Shown: positions 1 through 37,137 of the stretch, in pieces | How the letters are laid out: every line of letters starts with the position of its first letter | How positions within the stretch are numbered: the stretch's first letter is position 1 | Source: Haliotis rufescens | Taxonomy: Eukaryota | Length of the DNA stretch: 64,000 nucleotides | Assembly (NCBI RefSeq): GCF_023055435.1 | Contig: NW_025963779.1 | Location: forward strand, 36,270,001-36,334,000 | Direction of reading: 5' to 3' | The notes under the pieces: model-generated | Seen by the model: only the letters and a program-made list of their open reading frames with translations | Told to the model about the DNA's origin: nothing | Database searches by the model: none | Made by a program: the position numbers and the translations under genes

Positions 1-85
1 CCGAGGTTTCCCCAACGAGGATAGATCCAATGCTTTAGGCTCAGTGGAAAGAAGTCAATCAAACCCACCATGCCACGGCTCACCC
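1..85 (-). ncRNA. Putative Pol III small RNA, type A (3' part cut off by the window edge)
   Basis: Same core as 2289-2419, with TATA at 107-116. Confidence 0.55.
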
Positions 86-985
86 GGCAGAGATACATGC
101 AAGTTGTATACTTATACCACAGGTTAGTGGCTTGAAATACTCCCATGTGGTTGTGCAATTAACTGTGAAAGGGAGACAACTCCTGTATCCTTATAGTCAA
201 CGAACCAGTTGTTGGAAGACCGTGTGTCCTATGTTGGATGGTTATGCAAAAATACACAATCGTAATGATATAAGGATAAATCACATTTCATTGAAAGTTG
301 GACAAATTGAATAAAATGCTTTCTGGGGAAACTATTTTAGTTTAAATCTATACCATCATGTTTACTTGAATTAACTCCACATCATTGTGATCTCCCGGTG
401 CACATTCATGGAAGTTTTATCAGCCTGGTTGAATACGCTGAATGTGGGTTGAACATGCTTATTTATATTGCAACTGAATTCTAGGAAATATGCACGAACG
501 TTGCTGCCAATGGAGACGTAGAAAAGGACATGTAAATACAAACAACAATAGGGTGGATGCCCGAAAAAGAAACTCGCTCCCAATGTAAAAGTTTTATTTG
601 ACTGTTGAATGGATGTTTGATGCGAAAGAGGGGAGTCTTATATATATATACAGTAACGTGGCATTAACATGACACTGTCTGTTTCGATGTTGTATTGCAG
701 CGAACATGGTGATATATAAAGGAATGATTGTCAAAACAAGTTAAACGCAAAAGGATGAAACGCATCTAATGGGTGAAAGCATTTTCTAGTGTGTGCCATT
801 GATGAGAAAAAACAACATTCATCGGACATATACAATACTAAATACCGGTAAGTCAAGTGGAAATGTTATTTTAGATGATAGTTAATCATTCTTTCTGTCT
901 GCTAAATATATATTTTTTGTCTTGTTAATTTGCAAGTTGAAATCAAAACATGTCCAAAGTGGAACTGCCCAAAGGCAAAAATAGG

Positions 986-1118
986 AAAAAGGTGAGTATC
1001 GAGTTAGCGTGGTGGTATCCCCGCGGTTCGACCGAGGTTTCCCCAACGAGGATAGATCCAATGCTTTAGGCTCAGTGGAAGTAAGTCAACAATCATCCCA
1101 CCATGCCACGGCTCACCC
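986..1118 (-). ncRNA. Putative Pol III small structured RNA, type B (133 nt)
   Basis: G start at 1118, TATAAGTATA at 1149-1140 (-31), terminal stem GGUGAG/CUCACC, T5 terminator at 990-986. Confidence 0.65.
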
Positions 1119-1139
1119 GGCAGAGATACAGGCAAGTTG

Positions 1140-1193
1140 TATACTTATACCACCGGTTAGTGGCTTGAAATACTCCCATGTGGTTGTGCAATT
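1140..1193 (-). promoter_or_regulatory. TATA box plus conserved PSE-position block (present in every sub-unit)
   Basis: A/B identity ends abruptly at about -75 (gtgcaatt). TATA at -31 matches U6-type (type 3) promoter spacing. Confidence 0.6.
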
Positions 1194-1394
1194 AGCCGCA
1201 CAAGGGATATAATTCATGTAACACTGATCAAGTATTAGTCAATTTGAGGATGGGGCGTCCCGTTTCCGATATTGAAATGAAAACGTCAAAGATTACCAAA
1301 ATAAGGTGAGACATTATTTCAGCTTTAGTCCTAAAAATGTAATAAAATGCTTTCTGAGGAAATATTTATAGTTTAAATCGATGTCATCCCGTTT

Positions 1395-1437
1395 ATTTGC
1401 ATAAACTCGCCGTCATTGGGATATCTTGAATGCAAAT
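1395..1437. promoter_or_regulatory. Pair of perfect octamer motifs upstream of type B genes (DSE-like)
   Basis: ATTTGCAT at 1395-1402 and ATGCAAAT at 1430-1437 (about -280 and -315), retained in the B units. Confidence 0.4.
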
Positions 1438-2288
1438 ACATGAACGATTTGACAGCCTGGTTGAAGAAGTTGAATGTAGGTTGAACATGGTTATTTTGAG
1501 TGCAAGTGAATCGCAAGAAACGTTCGTGTAGCTGCCAGTGAAGATATAGAAATGAACACGTACATAAGTAAACAATAATGAAAGTGGATACCCACACGAG
1601 AGACTGGTGTCGTAGTCAATGTAACAATCATTAATGACTGTTGACTTGATGTTTGATTTAAGCTTTAAGCGTCGTAGTAATGCGGAGAAGTATTTCTACA
1701 CAATTACGCGGCATTATCATGGGAATGTTTGTTTTTTCATGAGGTAATTCAGCGATTAGGGCACCATATGAATGAGTGATTGTTGAAGTTAGGAAAATGA
1801 TTTCTGACATTTCATGCGAAAAAGAAAGTTTAGCATTGTAAATAGCATGGGACTTGAATACGGTTATAGTTTGTAACATTAGACATCTCTAACTAATTGA
1901 GCATTGACACATTATGTACGCTTTTGTTATAGATGCGAGTAAAGGGTTATCAAGGAACTGCATACTCGTTCGCTTATTCTTTAAATTTGCACTATTCATG
2001 GCGAAATTTACCTAACACAAGTTGACATTTTAACCTAGAATTTGGAAACGTACACAATGAATGAAGACGCTCATGTTGTAAGTAATAACTGGAAAAAGAA
2101 TCGCGGTTAGAAGAAAAGAATACAAATACTTAACAACAGTAAATTAAGTGAACATTATAATTTAGATGATATTAAGTGAGACACAGAGAGACACTATCTG
2201 TTTGCTCAATAAATGTGTTTTGTCTTGTTAAATTGTAAGATGAGATCAAAACATGTGCAACGTATAACTGCCCAAAGGCAAAACTAGG

Positions 2289-2419
2289 AAAAAGGTGAGT
2301 ATCGAGTTAGCATGGTGGTATCCCCGCGGTTCGACCGAGGTTTCCCCAACGAGGATAGATCCAATGCTTTAGGCTCAGTGGAAAGAAGTCAATCAAACCC
2401 ACCATGCCACGGCTCACCC
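2289..2419 (-). ncRNA. Putative Pol III small structured RNA, type A (131 nt)
   Basis: GGGUGAGCCGUGGCAUGGUGG...CCACCAUGCUAACUCGAUACUCACCUUUUU; TATA at -31, A-box-like at +11, B-box-like at +84. Confidence 0.65.
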
Positions 2420-3319
2420 GGCAGAGATACATGCAAGTTGTATACTTATACCACAGGTTAGTGGCTTGAAATACTCCCATGTGGTTGTGCAATTAACTGT
2501 GAAAGGGAGACAACTCCTGTATCCTTATAGTCAACGAACCAGTTGTTGGAAGACCGTGTGTCCTATGTTGGATGGTTATCCAAAAATACACAATCGTAAT
2601 GATATAAGGATAAATCACATTTCATTGAAAGTTGGACAAATTGAATAAAATGCTTTCTGGGGAAACTATTTTAGTTTAAATCTATACCATCATGTTTACT
2701 TGAATTAACTCCACATCATTGTGATCTCCCGGTGCACATTCATGGAAGTTTTATCAGCCTGGTTGAATACGCTGAATGTGGGTTGAACATGCTTATTTAT
2801 ATTGCAACTGAATTCTAGGAAATATGCACGAACGTTGCTGCCAATGGAGACGTAGAAAAGGACATGTAAATACAAACAACAATAGGGTGGATGCCCGAAA
2901 AAGAAACTCGCTCCCAATGTAAAAGTTTTATTTGACTGTTGAATGGATGTTTGATGCGAAAGAGGGGAGTCTTATATATATATACAGTAACGTGGCATTA
3001 ACATGACACTGTCTGTTTCGATGTTGTATTGCAGCGAACATGGTGATATATAAAGGAATGATTGTCAAAACAAGTTAAACGCAAAAGGATGAAACGCATC
3101 TAATGGGTGAAAGCATTTTCTAGTGTGTGCCATTGATGAGAAAAAACAACATTCATCGGACATATACAATACTAAATACCGGTAAGTCAAGTGGAAATGT
3201 TATTTTAGATGATAGTTAATCATTCTTTCTGTCTGCTAAATATATATTTTTTGTCTTGTTAATTTGCAAGTTGAAATCAAAACATGTCCAAAGTGGAACT
3301 GCCCAAAGGCAAAAATAGG

Positions 3320-3452
3320 AAAAAGGTGAGTATCGAGTTAGCGTGGTGGTATCCCCGCGGTTCTACCGAGGTTTCCCCAACGAGGATAGATCCAATGCTT
3401 TAGGCTCAGTGGAAGTAAGTCAACAATCATCCCACCATGCCACGGCTCACCC
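3320..3452 (-). ncRNA. Type B copy
   Basis: Same core; one substitution in the B-box hairpin. Confidence 0.6.
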
Positions 3453-4622
3453 GGCAGAGATACAGGCAAGTTGTATACTCATACCACCGGTTAGTGGCTT
3501 GAAATACTCCCATGTGGTTGTGCAATTAGCCGCACAAGGGATATAATTCATGTAACACTGATCAAGTATTAGTCAATTTGAGGATGGGGCGTCCCGTTTC
3601 CGATATTGAAATGAAAACGTCAAAGATTACCAAAATAAGGTGAGACATTATTTCAGCTTTAGTCCTAAAAATGTAATAAAATGCTTTCTGAGGAAATATT
3701 TATAGTTTAAATCGATGTCATCCCGTTTATTTGCATTAACTCGCCGTCATTGGGATATCTTGAATGCAAATACATGAACGATTTGACAGCCTGGTTGAAG
3801 AAGTTGAATGTAGGTTGAACATGGTTATTTTGAGTGCAAGTGAATCGCAAGAAACGTTCGTGTAGCTGCCAGTGAAGATATAGAAATGAACACGTACATA
3901 AGTAAACAATAATGAAAGTGGATACCCACACGAGAGACTGGTGTCGTAGTCAATGTAACAATCATTAATGACTGTTGACTTGATGTTTGATTTAAGCTTT
4001 AAGCGTCGTAGTAATGCGGAGAAGTATTTCTACACAATTACGCGGCATTATCATGGGAATGTTTGTTTTTTCATGAGGTAATTCAGCGATTAGGGCACCA
4101 TATGAATGAGTGATTGTTGAAGTTAGGAAAATGATTTCTGACATTTCATGCGAAAAAGAAAGTTTAGCATTGTAAATAGCATGGGACTTGAATACGGTTA
4201 TAGTTTGTAACATTAGACATCTCTAACTAATTGAGCATTGACACATTATGTACGCTTTTGTTATAGATGCGAGTAAAGGGTTATCAAGGAACTGCATACT
4301 CGTTCGCTTATTCTTTAAATTTGCACTATTCATGGCGAAATTTACCTAACACAAGTTGACATTTTAACCTAGAATTTGGAAACGTACACAATGAATGAAG
4401 ACGCTCATGTTGTAAGTAATAACTGGAAAAAGAATCGCGGTTAGAAGAAAAGAATACAAATACTTAACAACAGTAAATTAAGTGAACATTATAATTTAGA
4501 TGATATTAAGTGAGACACAGAGAGACACTATCTGTTTGCTCAATAAATGTGTTTTGTCTTGTTAAATTGTAAGATGAGATCAAAACATGTGCAACGTATA
4601 ACTGCCCAAAGGCAAAACTAGG

Positions 4623-4753
4623 AAAAAGGTGAGTATCGAGTTAGCATGGTGGTATCCCCGCGGTTCGACCGAGGTTTCCCCAACGAGGATAGATCCAATG
4701 CTTTAGGCTCAGTGGAAAGAAGTCAATCAAACCCACCATGCCACGGCTCACCC
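4623..4753 (-). ncRNA. Type A copy
   Basis: Same core. Confidence 0.65.
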
Positions 4754-5651
4754 GGCAGAGATACATGCAAGTTGTATACTTATACCACAGGTTAGTGGCT
4801 TGAAATACTCCCATGTGGTTGTGCAATTAACTGTGAAAGGGAGACAACTCCTGTATCCTTTTAGTCAACGAACCAGTTGTTGGAAGACCGTGTGTCCTAT
4901 GTTGGATGGTTATGCAAAAATACACAATCGTAATGATATAAGGATAAATCACATTTCATTGAAAGTTGGACAAATTGAATAAAATGCTTTCTGGGGAAAC
5001 TATTTTAGTTTAAATCTATACCATCATGTTTACTTGAATTAACTCCACATCATTGTGATCTCCCGGTGCACATTCATGGAAGTTTTATCAGCCTGGTTGA
5101 ATACGCTGAATGTGGGTTGAACATGCTTATTTATATTGCAACTGAATTCTAGGAAATATGCACGAACGTTGCTGCCAATGGAGACGTAGAAAAGGACATG
5201 TAAATACAAACAACAATAGGGTGGATGCCCGAAAAAGAAACTAGCTCCCAATGTAAAAGTTTTATTTGACTGTTGAATGGATGTTTGATGCGAAATAGGG
5301 GAGTCTTACATATATTCAGTAACGTGGCATTAAAATGACACTGTCTGTCCCGATGTTGTATTGCAGCGAACATGGTAATATATAAAGGAATGATTGTCAA
5401 AACAAGTTAAACGCAAAAGGATGAAACGCATCTAATGGGTGAAAGCATTTTCTAGTGTGTGCCATTGATGAGAAAAAACAACATTCATCGGACATATACA
5501 ATACTAAATACCGGTAAGTCAAGTGGAAATGTTATTTTAGATGATAGTTAATCATTCTTTCTGTCTGCTAAATATATATTTTTTGTCTTGTTAATTTGCA
5601 AGTTGAAATCAAAACATGTCCAAAGTGGAACTGCCCAAAGGCAAAAATAGG

Positions 5652-5784
5652 AAAAAGGTGAGTATCGAGTTAGCGTGGTGGTATCCCCGCGGTTCGACCG
5701 AGGTTTCCCCAACGAGGATAGATCCAATGCTTTAGGCTCAGTGGAAGTAAGTCAACAATCATCCCACCATGCCACGGCTCACCC
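5652..5784 (-). ncRNA. Type B copy
   Basis: Same core. Confidence 0.65.
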
Positions 5785-6955
5785 GGCAGAGATACAGGCA
5801 AGTTGTATACTTATACCACCGGTTAGTGGCTTGAAATACTCCCATGTGGTTGTGCAATTAGCCGCACAAGGGATATAATTCATGTAACACTGATCAAGTA
5901 TTAGTCAATTTGAGGATGGGGCGTCCCGTTTCCGATATTGAAATGAAAACCGTCAAAGATTACCAAAATAAGGTGAGACATTATTTCAGCTTTAGTCCTA
6001 AAAATGTAATAAAATGCTTTCTGAGGAAATATTTATAGTTTAAATCGATGTCATCCCGTTTATTTGCATAAACTCGCCGTCATTGGGATATCTTGAATGC
6101 AAATACATGAACGATTTGACAGCCTGGTTGAAGAAGTTGAATGTAGGTTGAACATGGTTATTTTGAGTGCAAGTGAATCGCAAGAAACGTTCGTGTAGCT
6201 GCCAGTGAAGATATAGAAATGAACACGTACATAAGTAAACAATAATGAAAGTGGATACCCACACGAGAGACTGGTGTCGTAGTCAATGTAACAATCATTA
6301 ATGACTGTTGACTTGATGTTTGATTTAAGCTTTAAGCGTCGTAGTAATGCGGAGAAGTATTTCTACACAATTACGCGGCATTATCATGGGAATGTTTGTT
6401 TTTTCATGAGGTAATTCAGCGATTAGGGCACCATATGAATGAGTGATTGTTGAAGTTAGGAAAATGATTTCTGACATTTCATGCGAAAAAGAAAGTTTAG
6501 CATTGTAAATAGCATGGGACTTGAATACGGTTATAGTTTGTAACATTAGACATCTCTAACTAATTGAGCATTGACACATTATGTACGCTTTTGTTATAGA
6601 TGCGAGTAAATGGTTATCAAGGAACTGCATACTCGTTCGCTTATTCTATAAATTTGCACTATTCATGGCGAAATTTACCTAACACAAGTTGACATTTTAA
6701 CCTAGAATTTGGAAACGTACACAATGAATGAAGACGCTCATGTTGTAAGTAATAACTGGAAAAAGAATCGCGGTTAGAAGAAAAGAATACAAATACTTAA
6801 CAACAGTAAATTAAGTGAACATTATAATTTAGATGATATTAAGTGAGACACAGAGAGACACTATCTGTTTGCTCAATAAATGTGTTTTGTCTTGTTAATT
6901 TGTAAGATGAGATCAAAACATGTGCAACGTATAACTGCCCAAAGGCAAAACTAGG

Positions 6956-7086
6956 AAAAAGGTGAGTATCGAGTTAGCATGGTGGTATCCCCGCGGTTCG
7001 ACCGAGGTTTCCCCAACGAGGATAGATCCAATGCTTTAGGCTCAGTGGAAAGAAGTCAATCAAACCCACCATGCCACGGCTCACCC
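6956..7086 (-). ncRNA. Type A copy
   Basis: Same core. Confidence 0.65.
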
Positions 7087-7983
7087 GGCAGAGATACATG
7101 CAAGTTCTATACTTATACCACAGGTTATTGGCTTGAAATACTCCCATGTGGTTGTGCAATTGACTGTGAAAGGGAGACAACTCCTGTATCCTTATAGTCA
7201 AGAAACCAGTTGTTGAAAGACCGTGTGTCCTATGTTGGATGGTTATGCAAAATACACAATCGTAATGATATAAGGATAAATCACATTTCATTGAAAGTTG
7301 GACAAATTGAATAAAATGCATTCTGGGGAAACTATTTTAGTTTAAATCTATACCATCATGTTTACTTGAATTAACTCCAAATCATTGTGATCTCCCGGTG
7401 CACATTCATGGAAGTTTTATCAGCCTGGTTGAATACGCTGAATGTGGGTTGAACATGCTTATTTATATTGCAACTGAATTCTAGGAAATATGCACGAACG
7501 TGGCTGCCAATGGAGACGTAGAAAAGGACATGTAAATACAAACAACAATAGGGTGGATGCCCGAAAAAGAAACTCGCTCCCAATGTAAAAGTTTTATTTG
7601 ACTGTTGAATGGATGTTTGATGCGAAATAAGGGAGTCTTATATATATACAGTAACGTGGCATTAAAATGACACTGTCTGTCCCGATGTTGTATTGCAGCG
7701 AACATGGTAATATATAAAGGAATGATTGTCAAAACAAGTTAAACGCAAAAGGATGAAACGCATCTAATGGGTGAAAGCATTTTCTAGTGTGTGCCATTGA
7801 TGAGAAAAAACAACATTCATCGGACATATACAATACTAAATACCGGTAAGTCAAGTGGAAATGTTATTTTAGATGATAGTTAATCATTCTTTCTGTCTGC
7901 TAAATAAATATTTTTTGTCTTGTTAATTTGTAAGTTGAAATCAAAACATGTCCAAAGTGGAACTGCCCAAAGGCAAAACTAGG

Positions 7984-8116
7984 AAAAAGGTGAGTATCGA
8001 GTTAGCGTGGTGGTATCCCCGCGGTTCGACCGAGGTTTCCCCAACGAGGATAGATCCAATGCTTTAGGCTCAGTGGAAGTAAGTCAACAATCATCCCACC
8101 ATGCCACGGCTCACCC
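7984..8116 (-). ncRNA. Type B copy
   Basis: Same core. Confidence 0.65.
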
Positions 8117-9287
8117 GGCAGAGATATAGGCAAGTTGTATACTTATACCACAGGTTAGTGGCTTGAAATACTCCCATGTGGTTGTGCAATTAGCCGCACA
8201 AGGGATATATTTCATGTAACACTGATCAAGTATTAGTCAATTTGAGGATGGGGCGTCCCGTTTCCGATATTGAAATGAAAACGTCAAAGATTACAAAAAT
8301 ACGGTGAGACATTATTTCAGCTTTAGTCCTAAAAATGTAATAAAATGCTTTCTGAGGAAATAGTTATAGTTTAAATCGATGTCATCACGTTTATTTGCAT
8401 AAACTCGCCATCATTGGGATATCTTGAATGCAAATACATTAAAGGATTTGACAGCCTGGTTGAAGAAGTTGAATGTAGGTTGAACATGGTTATTTTGAGT
8501 GCAAGTGAATCGCAAGAAACGTTCGTGTAGCTGCCAGTGAAGATATAGAAATGAACACGTACATAAGTAAACAATAATGAAAGTGGATACCCACACGAGA
8601 GACCGGTGTCGTAGTCAATGTAACAATCATTAATGACTGTTGACTTGATGTTTGATTTAAGCTTTAAGCGTCGTAGTAATGCGGAGAAGTATTTCTACAC
8701 AATTACGCGGCATTATCATGGGAATGTTTGTTTTTTCATGAGGTAACTCAGCGATTAGGGAACTATATGAATGAGTGATTGTTGAAGTTAGGAAAATGAT
8801 TTCTGACATTTCATGCAAAAAAGAAAGTTTAGCATTGTAAATAGCATGGGACTTGAATATGGTTATAGTTTGTAACATTGGACATCTCTAACTAATTGAG
8901 CATTGACACATTATGTACGCTTTTGTTATAGATGCGAGTAAATGGTTATCAAGGAACTGCATACTCGTTCGCTTATTCTTTAAATTTGCACTATTCATGG
9001 CGAAATTTACCTAACACAAGTTGACATTTTAACCTAGAATTTGGAAACGTACACAATGAATGAAGACGCTCATGTTGTAAGTAATAACTGGAAAAAGAAT
9101 CGCGGTTAGAAGAAAAGAATACAAATACTTAACAACAGTAAATTAAGTGAACATTATAATTTAGATGATATTAAGTGAGACACAGAGAGACACTATCTGT
9201 TTGCTAAATAAATGTGTTTTGTCTTGTGAAATTGTAAGATGAGATCAAAACATGTGCAACGTATAACTGCCCAAAGGCAAAACTAGG

Positions 9288-9418
9288 AAAAAGGTGAGTA
9301 TCGAGTTAGCATGGTGGTATCCCCGCGGTTCGACCGAGGTTTCCCCAACGAGGATAGATCCAATGCTTTAGGCTCAGTGGAAAGAAGTCAATCAAACCCA
9401 CCATGCCACGGCTCACCC
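9288..9418 (-). ncRNA. Type A copy
   Basis: Same core. Confidence 0.65.
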
Positions 9419-10315
9419 GGCAGAGATACATGCAAGTTCTATACTTATACCACAGGTTATTGGCTTGAAATACTCCCATGTGGTTGTGCAATTGACTGTG
9501 AAAGGGAGACAACTCCTGTATCCTTATAGTCAAGAAACCAGTTGTTGAAAGACCGTGTGTCCTATGTTGGATGGTTATGCAAAATACACAATCGTAATGA
9601 TATAAGGATAAATCACATTTCATTGAAAGTTGGACAAATTGAATAAAATGCTCTCTGGGGAAACTATTTTAGTTTAAATCTATACCATCATGTTTACTTG
9701 AATTAACTCCACATCATTGTGATCTCGCGGTGCACATTCATGGAAGTTTTATCAGCCTGGTTGAATACGCTGAATGTGGGTTGAACATGCTTATTTATAT
9801 TGCAACTGAATTCTAGGAAATATGCACGAACGTGGCTGCCAATGGAGACGTAGAAAAGGACATGTAAATACAAACAACAATAGGGTGGATGCCCGAAAAA
9901 GAAACTCGCTCCCAATGTAAAAGTTTTATTTGACTGTTGAATGGATGTTTGATGCGAAATAAGGGAGTCTTATATATATACAGTAACGTGGCATTAAAAT
10001 GACACTGTCTGTCCCGATGTTGTATTGCAGCGAACATGGTAATATATAAAGGAATGATTGTCAAAACAAGTTAAACGCAAAAGGATGAAACGCATCTAAT
10101 GGGTGAAAGCATTTTCTAGTGTGTGCCATTGATGAGAAAAAACAACATTCATCGGACATATACAATACTAAATACCGGTAAGTCAAGTGGAAATGTTATT
10201 TTAGATGATAGTTAATCATTCTTTCTGTCTGCTAAATAAATATTTTTTGTCTTGTTAATTTGTAAGTTGAAATCAAAACATGTCCAAAGTGGAACTGCCC
10301 AAAGGCAAAACTAGG

Positions 10316-10448
10316 AAAAAGGTGAGTATCGAGTTAGCGTGGTGGTATCCCCGCGGTTCGACCGAGGTTTCCCCAACGAGGATAGATCCAATGCTTTAGG
10401 CTCAGTGGAAGAAAGTCAACAATCATCCCGCCATGCCACGGCTCACCC
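10316..10448 (-). ncRNA. Type B copy
   Basis: Same core; two private substitutions. Confidence 0.6.
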
Positions 10449-11618
10449 GGCAGAGATATAGGCAAGTTGTATACTTATACCACAGGTTATTGGCTTGAAA
10501 TACTCCCATGTGGTTGTGCAATTAGCTGCACAAGGGATATATTTCATGTAACACTGATCAAGTATTAGTCAATTTGAGGATGGGGCGTCCCGTTTCCGAT
10601 ATTGAAATGAAAACGTCAAAGATAACAAAAATACGGTGAGACATTATTTCAGCTTTAGTCCTAAAAATGTAATAAAATGCTTTCTGAGGAAATAGTTATA
10701 GTTTAAATCGATGTCATCACGTTTATTTGCATAAACTCGCCATCATTGGGATATCTTGAATGCAAATACATGAACGATTTGACAGCCTGGTTGAAGAAGT
10801 TGAATGTAGGTTGAACATGGTTATTTTGAGTGCAAGTGAATCGCAAGAAACGTTCGTGTAGCTGCCAGTGAAGATATAGAAATGAACACGTACATAAGTA
10901 AACAATAATGAAAGTGGATACCCACACGAGAGACCGGTGTCGTAGTCAATGTAACAATCATTAATGACTGTTGACTTGATGTTTGATTTAAGCTTTAAGC
11001 GTCGTAGTAATGCGGAGAAGTATTTCTACACAATTACGCGGCATTATCATGGGAATGTTTGTTTTTTCATGAGGTAACTCAGCGATTAGGGAACTATATG
11101 AATGAGTGATTGTTGAAGTTAGGAACATGATTTCTGACATTTCATGCGAAAAAGAAAGTTTAGCATTGTAAATAGCATGGGACTTGAATACGGTTATAGT
11201 TTGTAACATTAGACATCTCTAACTAATTGAACATTGACACATTATGTACGCTTTTGTTATAGATGCGAGTAAAGGGTTATCAAGGAACTGCATACTCGTT
11301 CGCTTATTCTTTAAATTTGCACTATTCATGGCGATATTTACCTAACACAAGTTGACATTTTAACCTAGAATTTGGAAACGTACACAATGAATGAAGACGC
11401 TCATGTTGTAAGTAATAACTGGAAAAAGAATCGCGGTTAGAAGAAAAGAATACAAATACTTAACAACAGTAAATTAAGTGAACATTATAATTTAGATGAT
11501 ATTAAGTGAGACACAGAGAGACACTATCTGTTTGCTCAATAAATGTGTTTTGTCTTGTTAATTTGTAAGATGAGATCAAAACATGTGCAACGTATAACTG
11601 CCCAAAGGCAAAACTAGG

Positions 11619-11749
11619 AAAAAGGTGAGTATCGAGTTAGCATGGTGGTATCCCCGCGGTTCGACCGAGGTTTCCCCAACGAGGATAGATCCAATGCTTT
11701 AGGCTCAGTGGAAAGAAGTCAATCAAACCCACCATGCCACGGCTCACCC
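11619..11749 (-). ncRNA. Type A copy
   Basis: Same core. Confidence 0.65.
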
Positions 11750-12648: not shown

Positions 12649-12781
12649 AAAAAGGTGAGTATCGAGTTAGCGTGGTGGTATCCCCGCGGTTCGACCGAGG
12701 TTTCCCCAACGAGGATAGATCCAATGCTTTAGGCTCAGTGGAAGTAAGTCAACAATCATCCCACCATGCCACGGCTCACCC
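12649..12781 (-). ncRNA. Type B copy
   Basis: Same core. Confidence 0.65.
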
Positions 12782-24298: not shown

Positions 24299-24431
24299 AA
24301 AAAGGTGAGTATCGAGTTAGCGTGGTGGTATCCCCGCGGTTCGACCGAGGTTTCCCCAACAAGGATAGATCCAATGCTTTAGGCTCAGTGGAAGTAAGTC
24401 AACAATCATCCCACCATGCCACGGCTCACCC
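24299..24431 (-). ncRNA. Type B copy (P3 U-G variant)
   Basis: Same core. Confidence 0.65.
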
Positions 24432-25599
24432 GGCAGAGATACAGGCAAGTTGTATACTTATACCACAGGTTAGTAGCTTGAAATACTCCCATGTGGTTGT
24501 GCAATTAGCCGCACAAGGGATATAATTCATGTAGCACTGATCAAGTATTAGTCAATTTGAGGATGGGGCGTCCCGTTTCCGATATTGAAATGAAAACGTC
24601 AAAGATAACCAAAATACGGTGAGACATTATTTCAGCTTTAGTCCTAAAAATGTAATAAAATGCTTTCTGAGGAAATAGTTATAGTTTAAATCGATGTCAT
24701 CCCGTTTATTTGCATAAACTCGCCATCATTGGGATATCTTGAATGCAAATACATGAACGATTTGACAGCCTGGTTGAAGAAGTTGAATGTAGGTTGAACA
24801 TGGTTATTTTGAGTGCAAGTGAATCGCAAGAAACGTTCGTGTAGCTGCCAGTGAAGATATAGAAATGAACACGTACATAAGTAAACAATAATGAAAGTGG
24901 ATACCCACACGAGACTGGTGTCGTAGTCAATGTAACAATCATTAATGACTGTTGACTTGATGTTTGATTTAAGCTTTAAGCGTCGTAGTAATGCGGAGAA
25001 GTATTTCTACACAATTACGCGGCATTATCATGGGAATGTTTGTTTTTTCATGAGGTAACTCAGCGATTAGGGCACTATATGAATGAGTGATTGTTGAAGT
25101 TAGGAACATGATTTCTGACATTTCATGCGAAAAAGAAAGTTTAGCATTGTAAATAGCATGGGACTTGAATACGGTTATAGTTTGTAACATTAGACATCTC
25201 TAACTAATTGAACATTGACACATTATGTACGCTTTTGTTATAGATGCGAGTAAAGGGTTATCAAGGAACTGCATACTCGTTCGCTTATTCTTTAAATTTG
25301 CACTATTCATGGCGATATTTACCTAACACAAGTTGACATTTTAACCTAGAATTTGGAAACGTACACAATGAATGAAGACGCTCATGTTGTAAGTAATAAC
25401 TGGAAAAAGAATCGCGGTTAGAAGAAAAGAATACAAATACTTAACAACAGTAAATTAAGTGAACATTATAATTTAGATGATATTAAGTGAGACACAGAGA
25501 GACACTATCTGTTTGCTCAATAAATGTGTTTTGTCTTGTTAATTTGTAAGATGAGATCAAAACATGTGCAACGTATAACTGCCCAAAGGCAAAACTAGG

Positions 25600-25730
25600 A
25601 AAAAGGTGAGTATCGAGTTAGCATGGTGGTATCCCCGCGGTTCGACCGAGGTTTCCCCAACGAGGATAGATCCAATGCTTTAGGCTCAGTGGAAAGAAGT
25701 CAATCAAACCCACCATGCCACGGCTCACCC
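25600..25730 (-). ncRNA. Type A copy
   Basis: Same core. Confidence 0.65.
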
Positions 25731-26628
25731 GGCAGAGATACATGCAAGTTCTATACTTATACCACAGGTTATTGGCTTGAAATACTCCCATGTGGTTGTG
25801 CAATTGACTGTGAAAGGGAGACAACTCCTGTATCCTTATAGTCAACAAACCAGTTGTTGGAAGATCGTGTGTCCTATGTTGGATGGTTATGCAAAATACA
25901 CAATCGTAATGATATAAGGATAAATCACATTTCATTGAAAGTTGGACAAATTGAATAAAATGCTCTCTGGGGAAACTATTTTAGTTTAAATCTATACCAT
26001 CATGTTTACTTGAATTAACTCCATATCATTGTGATCTCGCGGTGCACAATCATGGAAGTTTTATCAGCCTGGTTGAATACGCTGAATGTGGGTTGAACAT
26101 GCTTATTTATATTGCAACTGAATTCTAGGAAATATGCACGAACGTGGCTGCCAATGGAGACGTAGAAAAGGACATGTAAATACAAACAACAATAGGGTGG
26201 ATGCCCGAAAAAGAAACTCGCTCCCAATGAAAAGTTTTATTTGACTGTTGAATGGATGTTTGATGCGAAATAAGGGAGTCTTATATATATATACAGTAAC
26301 GTGGCATTAAAATGACACTGTCTGTCCCGATGTTGTATTGCAGCGAACATTGTAATATATAAAGGAATGATTCTCAAAACAAGTTAAACGCAAAAGGATG
26401 AAACGCATCTAATGGGTGAAAGCATTTTCTAGTGTGTGCCATTGATGAGAAAAAACAGCATTCATCGGACATATACAATTCTAAATACCGGTAAGTCAAG
26501 TGGAAATGTTATTTTAGATGATAGTTAATCATTCTTTCTGTCTGCGAAATTAATATTTTTTGTCTTGTTAATTTGTAAGTTGAAATCAAAACATGTCCAA
26601 AGTGGAACTGCCCAAAGGCAAAAATAGG

Positions 26629-26761
26629 AAAAAGGTGAGTATCGAGTTAGCGTGGTGGTATCCCCGCGGTTCGACCGAGGTTTCCCCAACAAGGATAGAT
26701 CCAATGCTTTAGGCTCAGTGGAAGTAAGTCAACAATCATCCCACCATGCCACGGCTCACCC
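26629..26761 (-). ncRNA. Type B copy (P3 U-G variant)
   Basis: Same core. Confidence 0.65.
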
Positions 26762-27928
26762 GGCAGAGATACAGGCAAGTTGTATACTTATACCACAGGT
26801 TAGTAGCTTGAAATACTCCCATGTGGTTGTGCAATTAGCCGCACAAGGGATATAATTCATGTAGCACTGATCAAGTATTAGTCAATTTGAGGATGGGCGT
26901 CCCGTTTCCGATATTGAAATGAAAACGTCAAAGATTACAAAAATACGGTGAGACATTATTTCAGCTTTAGTCCTAAAAATGTAATAAAATGCTTTCTGAG
27001 GAAATAGTTATAGTTTAAATCGATGTCATCACGTTTATTTGCATAAACTCGCCATCATTGGGATATCTTGAATGCAAATACATGAACGATTTGACAGCCT
27101 GGTTGAAGAAGTTGAATGTAGGTTGAACATGGTTATTTTGAGTGCAAGTGAATCGCAAGAAACGTTCGTGTAGCTGCCAGTGAAGATATAGAAATGAACA
27201 CGTACATAAGTAAACAATAATGAAAGTGGATACCCACACGAGACTGGTGTCGTAGTCAATGTAACAATCATTAATGACTGTTGACTTGATGTTTGATTTA
27301 AGCTTTAAGCGTCGTAGTAATGCGGAGAAGTATTTCTACACAATTACGCGGCATTATCATGGGAATGTTTGTTTTTTCATGAGGAAACTCAGCGATTAGG
27401 GCACTATATGAATGAGTGATTGTTGAAGTTAGGAAAATGATTTCTGACATTTCATGCGAAAAAGAAAGTTTAGCATTGTAAATAGCATGGGACTTGAATA
27501 CGGTTATAGTTTGTAACATTAGACATCTCTAACTAATTGAACATTGACACATTATGTACGCTTTTGTTATAGATGCGAGTAAAGGGTTATCAAGGAACTG
27601 CATACTCGTTCGCTTATTCTTTAAATTTGCACTATTCATGGCGAAATTTACCTAACACAAGTTGACATTTTAACCTAGAATTTGGAAACGTACACAATGA
27701 ATGAAGACGCTCATATTGTAAGTAATAACTGGAAAAAGAATCGCGGTTAGAAGAAAAGAATACAAATACTTAACAACAGTAAATTAAGTGAACATTATAA
27801 TTTAGATGATATTAAGTGAGACACAGAGAGACACTATCTGTTTGCTCAATAAATGTGTTTTGTATTGTTAAATTGTAAGATGAGATCAAAACATGGGCAA
27901 CGTATAACTGCCTAAAGGCAAAACTAGG

Positions 27929-28059
27929 AAAAAGGTGAGTATCGAGTAAGCATGGTGGTATCCCCGCGGTTCGACCGAGGTTTCCCCAACGAGGATAGAT
28001 CCAATGCTTTAGGCTCAGTGGAAAGAAGTCAATCAAACCCACCATGCCACGGCTCACCC
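27929..28059 (-). ncRNA. Type A copy
   Basis: Same core; gagtaagc variant. Confidence 0.65.
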
Positions 28060-28958
28060 GGCAGAGAGACATGCAAGTTGTATACTTATACCACAAGTTA
28101 TTGGCTTGAAATACTCCCATGTGGTTGTGCAATTGACTGTGAAAGGGAGACAACTCCTGTATCCTTATAGTCAACGAACCAGTTGTTGGAAGACCGTGTG
28201 TCCTATGTTGGATGGTTATACAAAAATACACAATCGTAATGATATAAGGATCAATCACATTTCATTGAAAGTTGGACAAATTGAATAAAATGCTTTCTGG
28301 GGAAACTATTTTAGTTTAAATCTATACCATCATGTTTACTTGAATTAACTCCACATCATTGTGATCTCCTGGTGCACATTCATGGAAGTTTTATCAGCCT
28401 GGTTGAATACGCTGAATGTGGGTTGAACATGCTTATTTATATTGCAACTGAATTCTAGGAAATATGCACGAACGTGGCTGCCAATGGAGACGTAGAAAAA
28501 GACATGTAAATACAAACAACAATAGGGTGGATGCCCGAAAAAGAAACTCGCTCCCAATGAAAAGTTTTATTTGACTGTTGAATGGATGTTTGATGCGAAA
28601 TAAGGGAGTCTTATATATATATACAGTAACGTGGCATTAAAATGACACTGTCTGTCCCGATGTTGTATTGCAGCGAACATTGTAATATATAAAGGAATGA
28701 TTCTCAAAACAAGTTAAACGCAAAAGGATGAAACGCATCTAATGGGTGAAAGCATTTTCTAGTGTGTGCCATTGATGAGAAAAAACAGCATTCATCGGAC
28801 ATATACAATTCTAAATACCGGTAAGTCAAGTGGAAATGTTATTTTAGATGATAGTTAATCATTCTTTCTGTCTGCGAAATTAATATTTTTTGTCTTGTTA
28901 ATTTGTAAGTTGAAATCAAAACATGTCCAAAGTGGAACTGCCCAAAGGCAAAAATAGG

Positions 28959-29091
28959 AAAAAGGTGAGTATCGAGTTAGCGTGGTGGTATCCCCGCGGT
29001 TCGACCGAGGTTTCCCCAACAAGGATAGATCCAATGCTTTAGGCTCAGTGGAAGTAAGTCAACAATCATCCCACCATGCCACGGCTCACCC
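28959..29091 (-). ncRNA. Type B copy (P3 U-G variant)
   Basis: Same core. Confidence 0.65.
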
Positions 29092-30259
29092 GGCAGAGAT
29101 ACAGGCAAGTTGTATACTTATACCACAGGTTAGTAGCTTGAAATACTCCCATGTGGTTGTGCAATTAGCCGCACAAGGGATATAATTCATGTAGCACTGA
29201 TCAAGTATTAGTCAATTTGAGGATGGAGCGTCCCGTTTCCGATATTGAAATGAAAACGTCAAAGATAACCAAAATACGGTGAGACATTATTTCAGCTTTA
29301 GTCCTAAAAATGTAATAAAATGCTTTCTGAGGAAATAGTTATAGTTTAAATCGATGTCATCCCGTTTATTTGCATAAACTCGCCATCATTGGGATATCTT
29401 GAATGCAAATACATGAACGATTTGACAGCCTGGTTGAAGAAGTTGAATGTAGGTTGAACATGGTTATTTTGAGTGCAAGTGAATCGCAAGAAACGTTCGT
29501 GTAGCTGCCAGTGAAGATATAGAAATGAACACGTACATAAGTAAACAATAATGAAAGTGGATACCCACACGAGACTGGTGTCGTAGTCAATGTAACAATC
29601 ATTCATGACTGTTGACTTGATGTTTGATTTAAGCTTTAAGCGTCGTAGTAATGCGGAGAAGTATTTCTACACAATTACGCGGCATTATCATGGGAATGTT
29701 TGTTTTTTCATGAGGTAACTCAGCGATTAGGGCACTATATGAATGAGTGATTGTTGAAGTTAGGAAAATGATTTCGGACATTTCATGCGAAAAAGAAAGT
29801 TTAGCATTGTAAATAGCATAGGACTTGAATACGGTTATAGTTTGTAACATTAGACATCTCTAACTAATTGAACATTGACACATTATGTACGCTTTTGTTA
29901 TAGATGCGAGTAAAGGGTTATCAAGGAACTGCATACTCGTTCGCTTATTCTTTAAATTTGCACTATTCATGGCGATATTTACCTAACACAAGTTGACATT
30001 TTAACCTAGAATTTGGAAACGTACACAATGAATGAAGACGCTCATGTTGTAAGTAATAACTGGAAAAAGAATCGCGGTTAGAAGAAAAGAATACAAATAC
30101 TTAACAACAGTAAATTAAGTGAACATTATAATTTAGATGATATTAAGTGAGACACAGAGAGACACTATCTGTTTGCTCAATAAATGTGTTTTGTATTGTT
30201 AAATTGTAAGATGAGATCAAAACATGTGCAACGTATAACTGCCCAAAGGCAAAACTAGG

Positions 30260-30390
30260 AAAAAGGTGAGTATCGAGTTAGCATGGTGGTATCCCCGCGG
30301 TTCGACCGAGGTTTCCCCAACGAGGATAGATCCAATGCTTTAGGCTCAGTGGAAAGAAGTCAATCAAACCCACCATGCCACGGCTCACCC
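30260..30390 (-). ncRNA. Type A copy with a lesion in the upstream conserved block
   Basis: Same core; upstream aaatcctccat instead of aaatactcccat. Confidence 0.55.
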
Positions 30391-31287
30391 GGCAGAGATA
30401 CATGCAAGTTCTATACTTATACCACAGGTTATTGGCTTGAAATCCTCCATGTGGTTGTGCAATTGACTGTGAAAGGGAGACAACTCCTGTATCCTTATAG
30501 TCAACGAACCAGTTTTTGGAAGACCGTGTGTCCTATGTTGGATGGTTATGCAAAAATACACAATCGTAATGATATAAGGATAAATCTAATTTCATTGAAA
30601 GTTGGACAAATTGAATAAAATGCTTTCTGGGGAAACTATTTTAGTTTAAATCTATACCATCATGTTTACTTGAATTAACTCCACATCATTGTGATCTTCT
30701 GGTGCACATTCATGGAAGTTTTATCAGCCTGGTTGAATACGCTGAATGTGGGTTGAACATGCTTATTTATATTGCAACTGAATTCTAGGAAATATGCACG
30801 AATGTGGCTGCCAATGGAGACGTAGAAAAGGACATGTAAATACAAACAACAATAGGGTGGATGCCCGAAAAAGAAACTCGCTCCCAATGTAAAAGTTTTA
30901 TTTGACTGTTGAATGGATGTTGGATGCGAAATAGGGGAGTCTTATATATATACAGTAACGTGGCATTAAAATGACACTGTCTGTCCCGATGTTGTATTAC
31001 AGCGAACATGGTAATATATAAAGGAATGATTGTCAAAACAAGTTAAACGCAAAAGGATGAAACGCATCTAATGGGTGAAAGCATTTTCTAGTGTGTGCCA
31101 TTGATGCGAAAAAACAACATTCATCGGACATATACAATACTAAATACCGGTAAGTCAAGTGGAAATGTTATTTTAGATAATAGTTAATCATTCTTTCTGT
31201 CTGCAAAATTAATATTTTTTGTCTTGTTAATTTGTAAGTTGAAATCAAAACATGTCCAAAGTGGAACTGCCCAAAGGCAAAAATAGG

Positions 31288-31420
31288 AAAAAGGTGAGTA
31301 TCGAGTTAGCGTGGTGGTATCCCCGCGGTTCGACCGAGGTTTCCCCAACAAGGATAGATCCAATGCTTTAGGCTCAGTGGAAGTAAGTCAACAATCATCC
31401 CACCATGCCACGGCTCACCC
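31288..31420 (-). ncRNA. Type B copy (P3 U-G variant)
   Basis: Same core. Confidence 0.65.
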
Positions 31421-32590
31421 GGCAGAGATACAGGCAAGTTGTATACTTATACCACAGGTTAGTAGCTTGAAATACTCCCATGTGGTTGTGCAATTAGCCG
31501 CACAAGGGATATAACTCAATTTACACTGATCAAGTATTAGTCAATATGAGGATGGGGCGTCCCGTTTCCGATATTGAAATGAAAACGTCAAAGATTACAA
31601 AAATACGGTGAGACATTATTTCAGCTTTAGTCCTAAAAATGTAATAAAATGCTTTCTGAGGAAATAGTTATAGTTTAAATCGATGTCATCCCGTTTATTT
31701 GCATAAACTCGCCTTCATTGGGATATCTTGAATGCAAATACATGAACGATTTGACAGCCTGGTTGAAGAAGTTGAATGTAGGTTGAACATGGTTATTTTG
31801 AGTGCAAGTGAATCGCAAGAAACGTTCGTGTAGCTGCCAGTGAAGATATAGAAATGAACACGTACATAAGTAAACAATAATGAAAGTGGATACCCACACG
31901 AGAGACTGGTGTCGTAGTCAATGTAACAATCATTAATGACTGTTGACTTGATGTTTGATTTAAGCTTTAAGCGCCGTAGTAATGCGGAGAAGTATTTCTA
32001 CACAATTACGCGGCATTATCATGGGAATGTTTGATTTTTCATGAGGTAACTCTGCGATTAGGGCACCATATGAATGAGTGATTGTTGAAGTTAGGAAAAT
32101 GATTTCGGACATTTCATGCGAAAAAGAAAGTTTAGCATTGTAAATAGCATGGGACTTGAATACGGTTATAGTGTGTAACATTAGACATCTCTAACTAATT
32201 GAACATTGACACATTATGTACGCTTTTGTTATAGATGCGAGTAAAGGGTTATCAAGGAAATGCATACTCGTTCGCTTATTCTTTAAATCTGCACTATTCA
32301 TGGCGAAATTTACCTAACACAAGTTGACATTTTAACCTAGAATTTGGAAACGTACACAATGAATGAAGACGCTCATGTTGTAAGTAATAACTGGAAAAAG
32401 AATCGCGGTTAGAAGAAAAGAATACAAATACTTAACAACAGTAAATCAAGTGAACATTATAATTTAGATGATATTAAGTGAGACACAGAGAGACACTATC
32501 TGTTTGCTCAATAAATGTGTTTTGTCTTGTTAATTTGTAAGATGAGATCAAAACATGTGCAACGTATAACTGCCCAAAGGCAAAACTAGG

Positions 32591-32721
32591 AAAAAGGTGA
32601 GTATCGAGTTAGCATGGTGGTATCCCCGCGGTTCGACCGAGGTTTCCCCAACAAGGATAGATCCAATGCTTTAGGCTCAGTGGAAAGAAGTCAATCAAAC
32701 CCACCATGCCACGGCTCATCC
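32591..32721 (-). ncRNA. Type A copy
   Basis: Same core; mismatch in the terminal stem and the P3 variant otherwise seen in B copies. Confidence 0.55.
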
Positions 32722-32862
32722 GGCAGAGATACATGCAAGTTGTATACTTATACCACAGGTTAGTGGCTTGAAATACTCCCATGTGGTTGTGCAATTTACT
32801 GTGAAAGGGAGACAACTCCTGTATCCTTATAGTCAACGAACCAGTTGTTGGAAGACCGTGTG

Positions 32863-33131
32863 AGTTGGGTTTAACGCCGCTTTTAACAGTATTCCAGTCA
32901 TATCGCGGCGTGTCAGCTTAATGTGGGAGGAAAGCCCGAAGTGATGCAGGTCTTAGACATTTACCACTTCGGTGAAACCCACGAGCACGGGTATGGTGCT
33001 GACAAACCTAGAAACATAATTGGGGCGAACCAAGATTCGAACCCACAATCATAGGTTTCTGGCGTGCCCAAGGGACGCAACTCTGCACAGCGAATCGCGG
33101 CGCCTTAGACGACTGGGCCACCCGTGCCCCC
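32863..33131 (-). mobile_element. tRNA-headed SINE (family S1) inserted into one array unit
   Basis: Absent from all other units; perfect 13-bp TSD ggaagaccgtgtg at 32850-32862 and 33132-33144; A box TGGCCCAGTCG, B box GGTTCGAATC; homologous copies in the right half of the window. Confidence 0.95.
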
Positions 33132-33901
33132 GGAAGACCGTGTGTCCTATGTTGGATGGTTATGCAAAAATATATAATCGTAATGATATAAGGATAAATC
33201 ACATTTCATTGAAAGTTGGACAAATTGAAGAATATGCTTTCTGGGGAAACTATTTGAGTTAAAATCTATACCATCATGTTTACTTGAATAAACTCCACAT
33301 CATTGTGATCTCCCGGTGCACATTCATGGAAGTTTTATCAGCCTGGTTGAATACGCTGAATGTGGGTTGAACATGCTTATTTATATTGCAACTGAATTCT
33401 AGGAAATATGCACGAACGTGGCTGCCAATGGAGACGTAGAAAAAGACATGTAAATACAAACAACAATAGGGTGGATGCCCGAAAAAGAAACTAGCTCCCA
33501 ATGTAAAAGTTTTATTTGACTGTTGAATGGATGTTGGATGCGAAATAGGGGAGTCTTATATATATACAGTAACGTGGCATTAAAATGACACTGTCTGTCC
33601 CGATGTTGTATTACAGCGAACATGGTAATATATAAAGGAATGATTGTCAAAACAAGTTAAACGCAAAAGGATGAAACGCATCTAATGGGTGAAAGCATTT
33701 TCTAGTGTGTGCCATTGATGCGAAAAAACAACATTCATCGGACATATACAATACTAAATACCGGTAAGTCAAGTGGAAATGTTATTTTAGATAATAGTTA
33801 ATCATTCTTTCTGTCTGCAAAATTAATATTTTTTGTCTTGTTAATTTGTAAGTTGAAATCAAAACATGTCCAAAGTGGAACTGCCCAAAGGCAAAAATAG
33901 G

Positions 33902-34034
33902 AAAAAGGTGAATATCGAGTTAGCGTGGTGGTATCCCCGCGGTTCGACCGAGGTTTCCCCAACGAGGATAGATCCAATGCTTTAGGCTCAGTGGAAGTAA
34001 GTCAACAATCATCCCACCATGCCACGGCTCACCC
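33902..34034 (-). ncRNA. Type B copy
   Basis: Same core; G-C to G-U change in the terminal stem. Confidence 0.6.
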
Positions 34035-35193
34035 GGCAGAGATACAGGCAAGTTGTATACTTATACCACAGGTTAGTAGCTTGAAATACTCCCATGTGGT
34101 TGTGCAATTAGCCGCACAAGGGATATAACTCAATTTACACTGATCAAGTATTAGTCAATTTGAGGATGGGGCGTCCCGTTTCCGATATTGAAATGAAAAC
34201 GTCAAAGATTACAAAAATACGGTGAGACATTATTTCAGCTTTAGTCCTAAAAAAATGTAATAAAATGCTTTCTGAGGAAATAGTTATAGTTTAAATCGAT
34301 GTCATCCCGTTTATTTGCATAAACTCGCCTTCATTGGGATATCTTGAATGCAAATACATGAACGATTTGACAGCCTGGTTGAAGAAGTTGAATGTAGGTT
34401 GAACATGGTTATTTTGAGTGCAAGTGAATCGCAAGAAACGTTCGTGTAGCTGCCAGTGAAGATATAGAAATGAACACGTACATAAGTAAACAATAATGAA
34501 AGTGGATACCCACACGAGAGACTGGTGTCGTAGTCAATGTAACAATCATTAATGACTGTTGACTTGATGTTTGATTTAAGCTTTAAGCGTCGTAGTAATG
34601 CGGAGAAGTATTTCTACACAATTACGCGGCATTATCATGGGAATGTTTGATTTTTCATGAGGTAACTCTGCGATTAGGGCACCATATGAATGAGTGATTG
34701 TTGAAGTTAGGAAAATGATTTCGGACATTTCATGCGAAAAAGAAAGTTTAGCATTGTAAATAGCATGGGACTTGAATACGGTTATAGTGTGTAACATTAG
34801 ACATCTCTAACTAATTGAACATTGACACATTATGTACGCTTTTGTTATAGATGCGAGTAAAGGGTTATCAAGGAACTGCATACTCGTTCGCTTATTCTAT
34901 AAATTTGCACTATTCATGGCGAAATTTACCTAACACAAGTTGACATTTTAACCTAGAATTTGGAAACGTACACAATGAATGAAGACGCTCATGTTGTAAG
35001 TAATAACTGGAAAAAGAATCGCGGTTGGAAGAAAAGAATACAAATACTTAACAACAGTAAATTAAGTGAACATTATAATTTAGTTGATATTAAGTGAGAC
35101 ACAGAGAGACACTATCTGTTTGCTCAATAAATGTGTTTTGTCTTGTTAATTTGTAACATGTGCAACGTATAACTGCCCAAAGGCAAAGCTAGG

Positions 35194-35280
35194 AAAAAGG
35201 TGAGTATCGAGTTAGCATGGTGGTATCCCCGCGGTTCAGTTGAAAGAAGTCAATCAAACCCACCATGCCACGGCTCACCC
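35194..35280 (-). pseudogene. Terminal type A copy with a 44-nt internal deletion and a decayed upstream block
   Basis: gcggttc|agttgaaag junction removes 44 nt; TATA retained, upstream block degraded; marks the end of the array. Confidence 0.75.
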
Positions 35281-37137
35281 GGCAGAGATACAGGGAAGCT
35301 GTATACTTATATCAGCACGTTTGTGTTGTAGAAAGGAGATAACTCACTGAGATACTTATACCAGTTGAGATACCGCTTGGTCAAACGTTTAGGATCTAAA
35401 AGTGAAATTATCTAAATGGAAACGTTCCATTTTCACCCCTGGAATTTGTTCTTTCAGATATGTATAGTATGGGAAAGGCTTAGACTTCCTTGTATGAAGA
35501 TTATTATAAGAAACTTTTGATGTCTTTACAAGACAGCTTTGAGATACTTTGTTTCCAAAATGGATTATTATGTTGTCGTTGTTTTTAATTTTTAATTGTT
35601 CGATAGATATTCATTTGTTCATTTATAAAATTAAAAGAATAAAATCCAAATGGAGCCAAGATCAATGCTTAATTGCAGAACTGAGGCCATCTTCGACTTG
35701 CAAAATAATTCTAGACTTGAATTGGATTATTTATGTTGGTGCCAAGTGTTGTATTTATACTATATATTTTGGTTATTTCAGGTATACTGTATAATTTTTA
35801 CTGATAAGTCTATGAATGTACCGGGTTTCCGGGTGTTATTGGAAGTCTATTTCCCCTGCCTCAACTATGCCGCCGTGGTTGTTTTGGAATTTCCTGCCTG
35901 ATAAAACAAGGAAAAAGAGGTTGGTAATTACCTGGTAATGTTCTGAGGAGTGACATATTTTTAATAATATCCGAAAAGCTTTTCTTTGTCCATAATATAT
36001 GACAACATCTCCTGTCTCACCTTCCCATGGGTGGGTTAGATCAAATGAAGCACGTAAGGAGAGAAGTTCAACTTTTCATGTTTTGTCAGTTGAATGTTAT
36101 TTTACGTTACAGTCAAAATAGTTCCACCTACTTCATATTGAAAATGTCACAAGAAATCCCACGGAAACACAGCCATTTTGTTCTGGGACTTATTCTACTC
36201 CGGAATCCTCACGGGAAGACAGACATTTTGTACTGAGCCTCCCAGAGTTTTCACGACTCAACAGAGGTGTGAATCCAATATCTGACTGAATATCTGATGC
36301 AATAGATTGTATCACTTGTTGCAATAATGAAACAACCTTTGGCTATGTTTCATATTAAACGACTAGTTAATGCAACTTTACGGCCTCGATATATCCAAGT
36401 AGCGTGGTCACCCCACAAAAAAAGAACATAAAAAATCATAACTGTGTTCCCATTGTTTTTTTTATTACTATTCATGGGTAAAGATCTTTATATAAATGCA
36501 TACTGTACAAGCTGGACTCACGAACACACAAAACAGAATATCTCACCAAACAAATAGTTACACGATGGTGAATATGAAATACCTGCGAAGACTGACATAC
36601 CTGAAAATTGCACATTCGCCAATAACCATAGTTCATCTATTAATACATGTATTTAGATCAGATTTGTAAAGTCATGAAATATATTGAAGAAATGTTTCTC
36701 ATCACAGTGCGGGTCAAAGCAAAACATTCCTTGTGAACGATGTTTCGTCACGGCTACGAATCACAGTTGGTTTTGTAGGGTAAAGACATCCGATTCTAAC
36801 ATTGTCTGTAAACGCCAAAGTGTCCGGATTTTAACGCAAGAGCCATCTTTCCTTGAATAAACTCAATCTCCTATCGTGATTAGTACATGTAATTAGTTTG
36901 TTTGAACCGAAGAAGCTGATGAAAGTCTGGTGATCCGCTATCTTAATAATACTATGACGAGAAACATTTTTGTCCAATTGCCATTATTGTCAAATGGTCC
37001 AACCATTAGCAGATGACGACAGGTTATTTGAATAGAAAATAGTTTTTTTTTGTATATCAGGAAACCCATTAATGAGGATAGCTTTCATACATACATGTTA
37101 TCGACACACCGTTCCGCTTCTACACTGTGGCAGGCAA

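Follow-up and report, generated by a model that had tools for sequence, protein, structure and literature searches.

The closest described counterparts of the gene family presented here are the Y RNAs and the nematode stem-bulge RNAs (sbRNAs). In the sbRNA consensus of Kowalski et al., the lower stem has 7 bp and is interrupted by a single bulged C, the upper stem has nine bp, GC clamps and a UG-CA at its centre, the loop is variable and starts with UUA(U/C)C, and there is a U-tail (PMC4450293). Y RNAs were found only in vertebrates and nematodes in a 2009 survey (PMC2770079), to which a 2015 review added only a few candidates from insects and amphioxus (PMC4726728). Our literature search returned no report of Y RNAs in molluscs or other lophotrochozoans, and nothing specific on mollusc vault RNAs. 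Ro60 itself is widespread. The locus considered here is a tandem array of minus-strand genes for a structured RNA in Haliotis rufescens, most of which lies in a 64,000-nt stretch of contig C1 (G000:C1:36270001-36334000, hereafter the window, numbered from its first letter). A sequence-only reading of the window had described about 30 RNA polymerase III (Pol III) genes there, in two alternating paralogues and without assignment to a known family. As judged from its sequence, the array is real: about 80 genes of Pol III type, maintained by selection, specify a structured RNA that Rfam does not contain, and they very probably form a functional small-RNA gene family.

The array and its paralogues

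An 18-nt core of the RNA has 31 matches in the window, all on the minus strand, where chance would give none; this count bears out the ~30 minus-strand genes first described. The extracted copies fall into two types, A and B, and gene spacing alternates between ~1031 and ~1301 bp in an A/B super-unit of 2.33 kb, as expected of the two alternating paralogues that had been proposed. Type A is 131 nt long and type B 133 nt, both including T5, and the commonest type A variant (10 copies) is letter-identical to the type A sequence as it was written out earlier. The first copy in the window is clipped by the window start (1-85); the whole C1 array holds 37 copies and starts at G000:C1:36262956, 7 kb ahead of the window. 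The parts of the array referred to below are as follows.

1..35345, minus strand: portion of the tandem array inside the window, with 31 alternating A and B genes
4623..4753, minus strand: example type A gene, a 126-nt RNA body (4628-4753) followed by the T5 terminator or U-tail (4623-4627)
3320..3452, minus strand: example type B gene, 133 nt including T5, distinguished from A chiefly by the variable loop (nt 22-37), with an A15-C108 mismatch in the upper stem
35195..35280, minus strand: last copy, degenerate and at the edge of the array; ~46 nt are deleted internally and most of the inner module is gone, and it scores 64 bits, against ~150 for intact copies

Copies are nearly identical within an array. 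No open reading frame in the spacers exceeds 74 aa, and ARAGORN calls no tRNA. Across the array (window 1-36000) GC content stays at 36-40% and GC skew is positive throughout (0.12-0.16); both shift abruptly at ~36 kb, at the array end.

A covariance model built from array copies (R1) was searched, together with BLAST, against the 1.33-Gb genome. R1 has 80 matches genome-wide, either in the C1 array (37) or on a second contig, C246 (~43), where they lie at 1.837-1.977 Mb apart from a weaker one that stands alone at C246:855733. The inner module of the RNA, searched as a pattern, likewise has 63 exact matches, confined to the C1 and C246 loci, and none in a reversed control.

G000:C246:1837183-1882348, 1959067-1977605 and 855733-855869: diverged paralogue arrays of classes C-F, including a few truncated copies (e.g. 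L080-L084)

Classes C and D alternate in a 2.49-kb super-unit that follows the same spacing logic as A and B. Class E is 145 nt long, has a hairpin inserted in the variable region and is arranged in ~860-bp units on the opposite strand, and class F (120 nt) has almost lost the variable region. The RNA body is thus ~116 nt long in F, 126-128 nt in A-D and ~141 nt in E. A metagenome scan with the 5' block of the RNA returned at least 120 matching stretches, which were treated as chance; R1 matched none of the 80 that were searched.

The transcribed segment is selectively conserved at both levels of divergence. When an A unit is aligned with a B unit and identities are scored per 50 columns, the RNA is 86-98% identical (43-49 identities), the next 50 bp downstream 84% (42 identities) and the last 50 bp before the next gene 94% (47 identities), against 28-76% (14-38 identities) for the aligned spacer, which also contains an indel of ~225 bp. 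The unit alignment thereby agrees with the near-identity of the RNA and its adjoining flanks, against diverged A and B spacers, that had been seen by eye. Comparison of the C1 with the C246 classes gives 73-93% identity for the RNA, whereas the 100-bp flanks (53-66%) are no better than unrelated DNA (57±4%). Within the RNA, nt 22-42 are variable and much of nt 43-100 is strongly conserved.

Promoter elements and predicted fold

The anatomy of the predicted gene is that of a type-3 Pol III gene. Two upstream elements are recognized in the example type A gene.

4777..4784, minus strand: TATA box TATAAGTA, at -31 to -24
4808..4826 (approximate), minus strand: upstream block TTGCACAAC-N-ATGG in the position of a proximal sequence element (PSE), at about -72 to -55, common to the C246 paralogues

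Both elements are kept between C1 and C246: the TATA-like box lies at around -30 to -40, and the block, at -58 to -70, reads T(G/T)CACAAC(C/A)A-N-ATG(G/T). Transcription is predicted to begin at a G. Beyond the 3' stem every intact class has a T5 run (T4 for the class F copies sampled), and the T-run stop and the TATA-like box are both intact in at least four array types. Other small-RNA genes of the same genome can be compared with this geometry: TATA lies at -28 and the block at -61 in U6, at -29/-30 and -64 in 7SK, and at -32 to -35 and -65 to -69 in the RNase MRP gene, while U1, a Pol II gene, has a block at -59 and no TATA. The TATA at -31, purine start, T5 end and PSE-type layout of the sequence-only reading are therefore found as described, with the geometry of the genome's U6, 7SK and MRP genes. 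The upstream blocks of the array, U6, 7SK, MRP and U1 share only loose sequence similarity, and the block is named PSE because of its position and conservation.

Internal elements are less clear. A box A-like TGGCATGGTGG at +11 is invariant among the classes. The box B-like GGTCGAACC, followed by GCGGGG, differs among them (GGTCAAACC, GGCCAAACC, GGTCGTACC, GGTAGAACC), and an internal B box is therefore doubtful.

The RNA is predicted to fold into a long panhandle that encloses a conserved inner module. Its main parts, in the example type A gene, are these.

4747..4753 (nt 1-7), minus strand: 5' strand of the lower stem P1, 7 bp, paired with nt 121-127 (4627-4633)
4746, minus strand: invariant unpaired C8, from RNAalifold and the minimum free energy (MFE) folds of the classes
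4733..4741 (nt 13-21), minus strand: 5' strand of the upper stem P2, 9 bp, paired with nt 102-110 (4644-4652)
4654..4695 (nt 59-100), minus strand: conserved inner module, a P3 helix (64-70/94-100) around small hairpins, one with a CUCG/UUCG tetraloop

For the class A example the MFE is -47.1 kcal/mol (z -2.95), and none of 200 shuffles folds as well; z-scores of single-sequence folds range from -2.0 to -3.4 for A, C, D, E and F and reach -1.7 for B. The MFE folds of A, C, D, E and F agree on P1, the unpaired C8, a 2-bp helix P1b (9-10 with 116-117) and the 2x5 internal loop next to it, P2 and P3. The class B MFE fold lacks P1b, which the class B centroid retains. Directly opposite C8, A118-N119-A120 are unpaired, to form a 1x3 internal loop. 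P2 is clamped at either end by G-C/C-G pairs (with G-U at 13:110 in D-F) and has an A15-U16-G17/C106-A107-U108 segment that is invariant except for C108 in class B, and G18U19G20/C103A104C105 in classes A and B.

This structure is kept across the diverged paralogues, as the sequence-only reading of a folded RNA would have it. Standard pairs fill 96.5% of pair cells over 13 representative sequences, compared with 36-45% in controls whose 3' partners were slid by 1-3 columns. Four pairs of P2 vary, all from G-C to G-U or from U-A to U-G, and its sole break is the A15-C108 mismatch at the centre of the stem, which is present and uncompensated in all 15 type B copies. Changes on both sides of a pair occur in P1 (G-U to C-G in F) and in the hairpin at 38-60. 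Pair 79:86 of the tetraloop hairpin appears as A-U, G-U and G-C across the classes, and its loop changes from CUCG to UUCG. The helices first drawn by hand (P1, P2, the 38-60 hairpin and P3) are all recovered by RNAfold and RNAalifold. The two inner hairpins of that drawing are 96.0% paired, and the alternative given by RNAfold fits equally well (96.5%).

Known RNA families and the Y/sbRNA plan

No Rfam family matches the window, one unit, the RNA alone or classes C-F at gathering scores or at E≤10, where only noise is returned; the lack of an assignment to known families thus stands. The U6, 7SK, RNase MRP and U1 models have high-scoring matches elsewhere in the genome and none in the array. 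By inspection only, telomerase RNA was rejected (there is no CCCUAA-type template), as were hammerhead or other ribozymes, U5/U6atac and the Alu domain of the signal recognition particle RNA.

As a rule, small-RNA genes of this genome form large tandem arrays. U6 forms one of at least 48 identical copies with a 1477-bp period (G000:C112:12755752-12846731), and U1 another of at least 42 copies with a 592-bp period (G000:C46:11179277-11242436). The array described here resembles them in its dozens of head-to-tail units and, for U6, in the positions of TATA and PSE; it differs in that its RNA has no sequence or structure similarity to any spliceosomal small nuclear RNA (snRNA), and no Sm site.

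The fold was predicted before it was compared with the published Y/sbRNA plan. The two have in common the type-3 Pol III promoter layout, an oligo-U tail and paired 5' and 3' ends; a 7-bp lower stem, a single bulged C and, possibly in the same arrangement, three unpaired nucleotides in the opposing strand; an upper stem of 9 bp, clamped by G-C pairs and with UG/CA at its centre (here AUG/CAU, with GUG/CAC in A and B); a variable loop that differs between paralogues; and organization as a multigene family. The paired ends and U-tail had already been likened to those of Y RNAs, and with the plan of 7-bp stem, bulged C and 9-bp stem the resemblance is stronger than was then thought, except in the sequence of the Ro60 contact. 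On the protein side, the genome has three loci with a TROVE domain on contig C24, at 2888141-2889076 (+), 2900012-2900947 (-) and 682914-689012 (+). The first two, separated by 11 kb and in opposite orientation, are uninterrupted open reading frames (558 and 568 aa) that each cover model positions 1-350, and the third is a multi-exon gene. They may represent Ro60 paralogues and TEP1, and as possible partners of the array RNA they provide permissive evidence only.

Several observations weigh against kinship with the Y RNAs. The canonical Ro60 contact GGUCCGA/UUGAC is absent, as had been noted at the outset, the lower stem being GUGAGCCGU / CUCGAUACUCAC, and Rfam Y_RNA (RF00019) has no match at E≤10 in classes A to F. 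The array RNA is 116-141 nt long, against 100±20 nt for published Y RNAs and sbRNAs, and nt 43-100 of its "loop domain" are largely among the best conserved parts, unlike in Y RNAs. The single C and the three nucleotides face each other directly, as a 1x3 internal loop, and motifs as short as UG/CA and RUG/CAY could arise by chance in a 9-bp helix. The evidence for structural conservation is real but thin, because the covariation comes from about five paralogue lineages of one genome. Furthermore, another register, 10-14 with 101-105, has two compensatory pairs; it leaves a 15-nt bulge and breaks one pair in 9 of the 13 sequences, and is kept as a possible alternative conformer in the modelled fold.

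Further differences concern the loop and the gene number. The UUAYC loop motif is absent; the loop starts with GUUUGAUUG in A, GAUGAUUG in B, GUUGAUAUC in C, GUAGAUAC in D and UUAGAUAC in E, with a shared motif [U/A]GAU[A/U] in its place. A large, conserved and structured module lies inside the loop domain and has no Y RNA counterpart. The array RNA has about 80 copies in tandem arrays, compared with 1-19 genes for Y RNAs and sbRNAs.

Canonical Y RNAs were also looked for in the genome. There is no Rfam Y_RNA match genome-wide in what was a weak search (51 candidates scored), and a pattern for canonical Y ends (GGUCCGA...UUGAC...UUUU) has 30 matches, against 76 in the reversed control, and hence no enrichment. 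Two mutually similar stretches of ~85 nt (G000, C79:17349360-17349441 and C223:48625614-48625700) start with UGGUCCGAUA and end with UUAUUUGAC-N-UUUU, the canonical Y RNA ends; no TATA was found within the 18-34 nt spacing window searched upstream of them. The same pattern has four matches of equal length on C594.

We consider the best explanation, with a probability of roughly 0.4, to be a Y/sbRNA-like RNA, be it through homology or a shared working principle. Its genes would be functional, multi-copy, U6-type Pol III genes, with a block in the PSE position, TATA near -30, a start at G and termination at oligo-T. The product would be a ~126-nt RNA with a U-tail and a long panhandle built like that of a Y RNA or a nematode sbRNA. 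In the most likely mechanism, La would bind the nascent U-tail, a protein of the Ro60/TROVE type would dock on the terminal 7-bp stem, including its bulged C and the three opposing nucleotides, and Y/sbRNA-type activity would reside in the 9-bp upper stem. Additional proteins would be drawn to the class-specific loop and the conserved module (nt 59-100), and the tandem arrays (37 and ~43 copies) would give a bulk supply, like the U1 and U6 arrays of this genome. That the array RNA is transcribed, abundant and bound by protein partners is what we infer.

Rival readings and significance

Nearly as likely is a class of abundant Pol III RNA that is new, lineage-specific and not related to Y RNAs or sbRNAs; its panhandle would be a generic end-protecting stem, and its function would reside in the inner module (nt 43-100), as the binding site of an unknown protein. 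The array RNA would then not be a Y RNA; tentatively, it could be a subunit of a hitherto unknown, abundant mollusc ribonucleoprotein (RNP) with its core at nt 43-100 and a gene copy number rivalling that of spliceosomal snRNAs. Such a class would accommodate the lack of any Rfam family at E≤10, the absence of Y signatures at the sequence level, a copy number (~80) far above that usual for Y RNA genes, and an inner module that is among the most conserved segments and has no Y RNA counterpart. Against it stands a combination that is hard to dismiss as coincidence: a 7-bp stem, a single bulged C facing three nucleotides, and a G-C-clamped stem of 9 bp with AUG/CAU at its centre. It must also contend with the TROVE proteins encoded in a genome where no other Y RNA was detected, by a weak search of 51 candidates.

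We regard it as improbable that the arrays are satellite-like collections of decaying or selfish Pol III units, such as an amplified pseudogene, without cellular function and kept homogeneous by concerted evolution alone. Near-identity within arrays can be explained by unequal crossing-over without selection, and truncated copies are present, yet the RNA body and only the promoter elements persist between arrays whose flanks are at background. Moreover, substitutions preserve the helices, and at least four array types retain an intact T-run stop and a TATA-like box.

Close to refuted is the idea of a diverged vault RNA paralogue that has a panhandle and internal A and B boxes and associates with the major vault protein. 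The vault-like option of the sequence-only reading draws on real similarities, namely a Pol III panhandle RNA of similar size with an upstream TATA, the box A-like TGGCATGGTGG at +11, and GGTCGAACC followed by GCGGGG, which resembles the vault box B region. It fails on the genome's own canonical vault RNA genes, which lie on contig C605, on the absence of any Vault-model score for the array RNA, and on a box B-like element that varies among the classes. C605 has 16 matches above the gathering score of Rfam Vault (RF00006), the best of which (57.4 bits, G000:C605:14444629-14444734) is a gene of textbook type with clear A and B boxes. The C605 vault genes are clustered at 14.44-14.46 Mb, 14.00 Mb, 0.12-0.13 Mb and 37.65 Mb, and several of them have a TATA at -31 and a TTGCACC block at -60.

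There is very little room for a master gene or retroposon family of a tRNA- or 7SL-derived short interspersed nuclear element (SINE), as might be suggested by the box A-like motif and the 7-bp, acceptor-like terminal stem: ARAGORN finds no tRNA, the promoter is external, and the family, with 63/63 inner-module matches within the two arrays, is confined to two loci and not dispersed, and is therefore not a SINE.

The window beyond the array has a few other features. A 40-bp tandem repeat at 52980-54017 comprises 26 copies with 95% matches, and a related 40-bp repeat of 3.3 copies lies at 56451-56581. A partial Rfam tRNA match at 55175-55233 on the minus strand (35.9 bits, model positions 7-64 of 71) is not called by ARAGORN, and is probably a tRNA-derived repeat or pseudogene.

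Should the array RNA be Y/sbRNA-like, it would extend that family to a new superphylum and show which of its features are ancestral, since the Y/sbRNA ground plan would here be combined with a different lower-stem sequence and an added module. Otherwise, a new and abundant Pol III RNP would be revealed. Under either reading the gene is clean, highly amplified and easily assayable, and its four to six natural sequence variants lend themselves to structure-function work.

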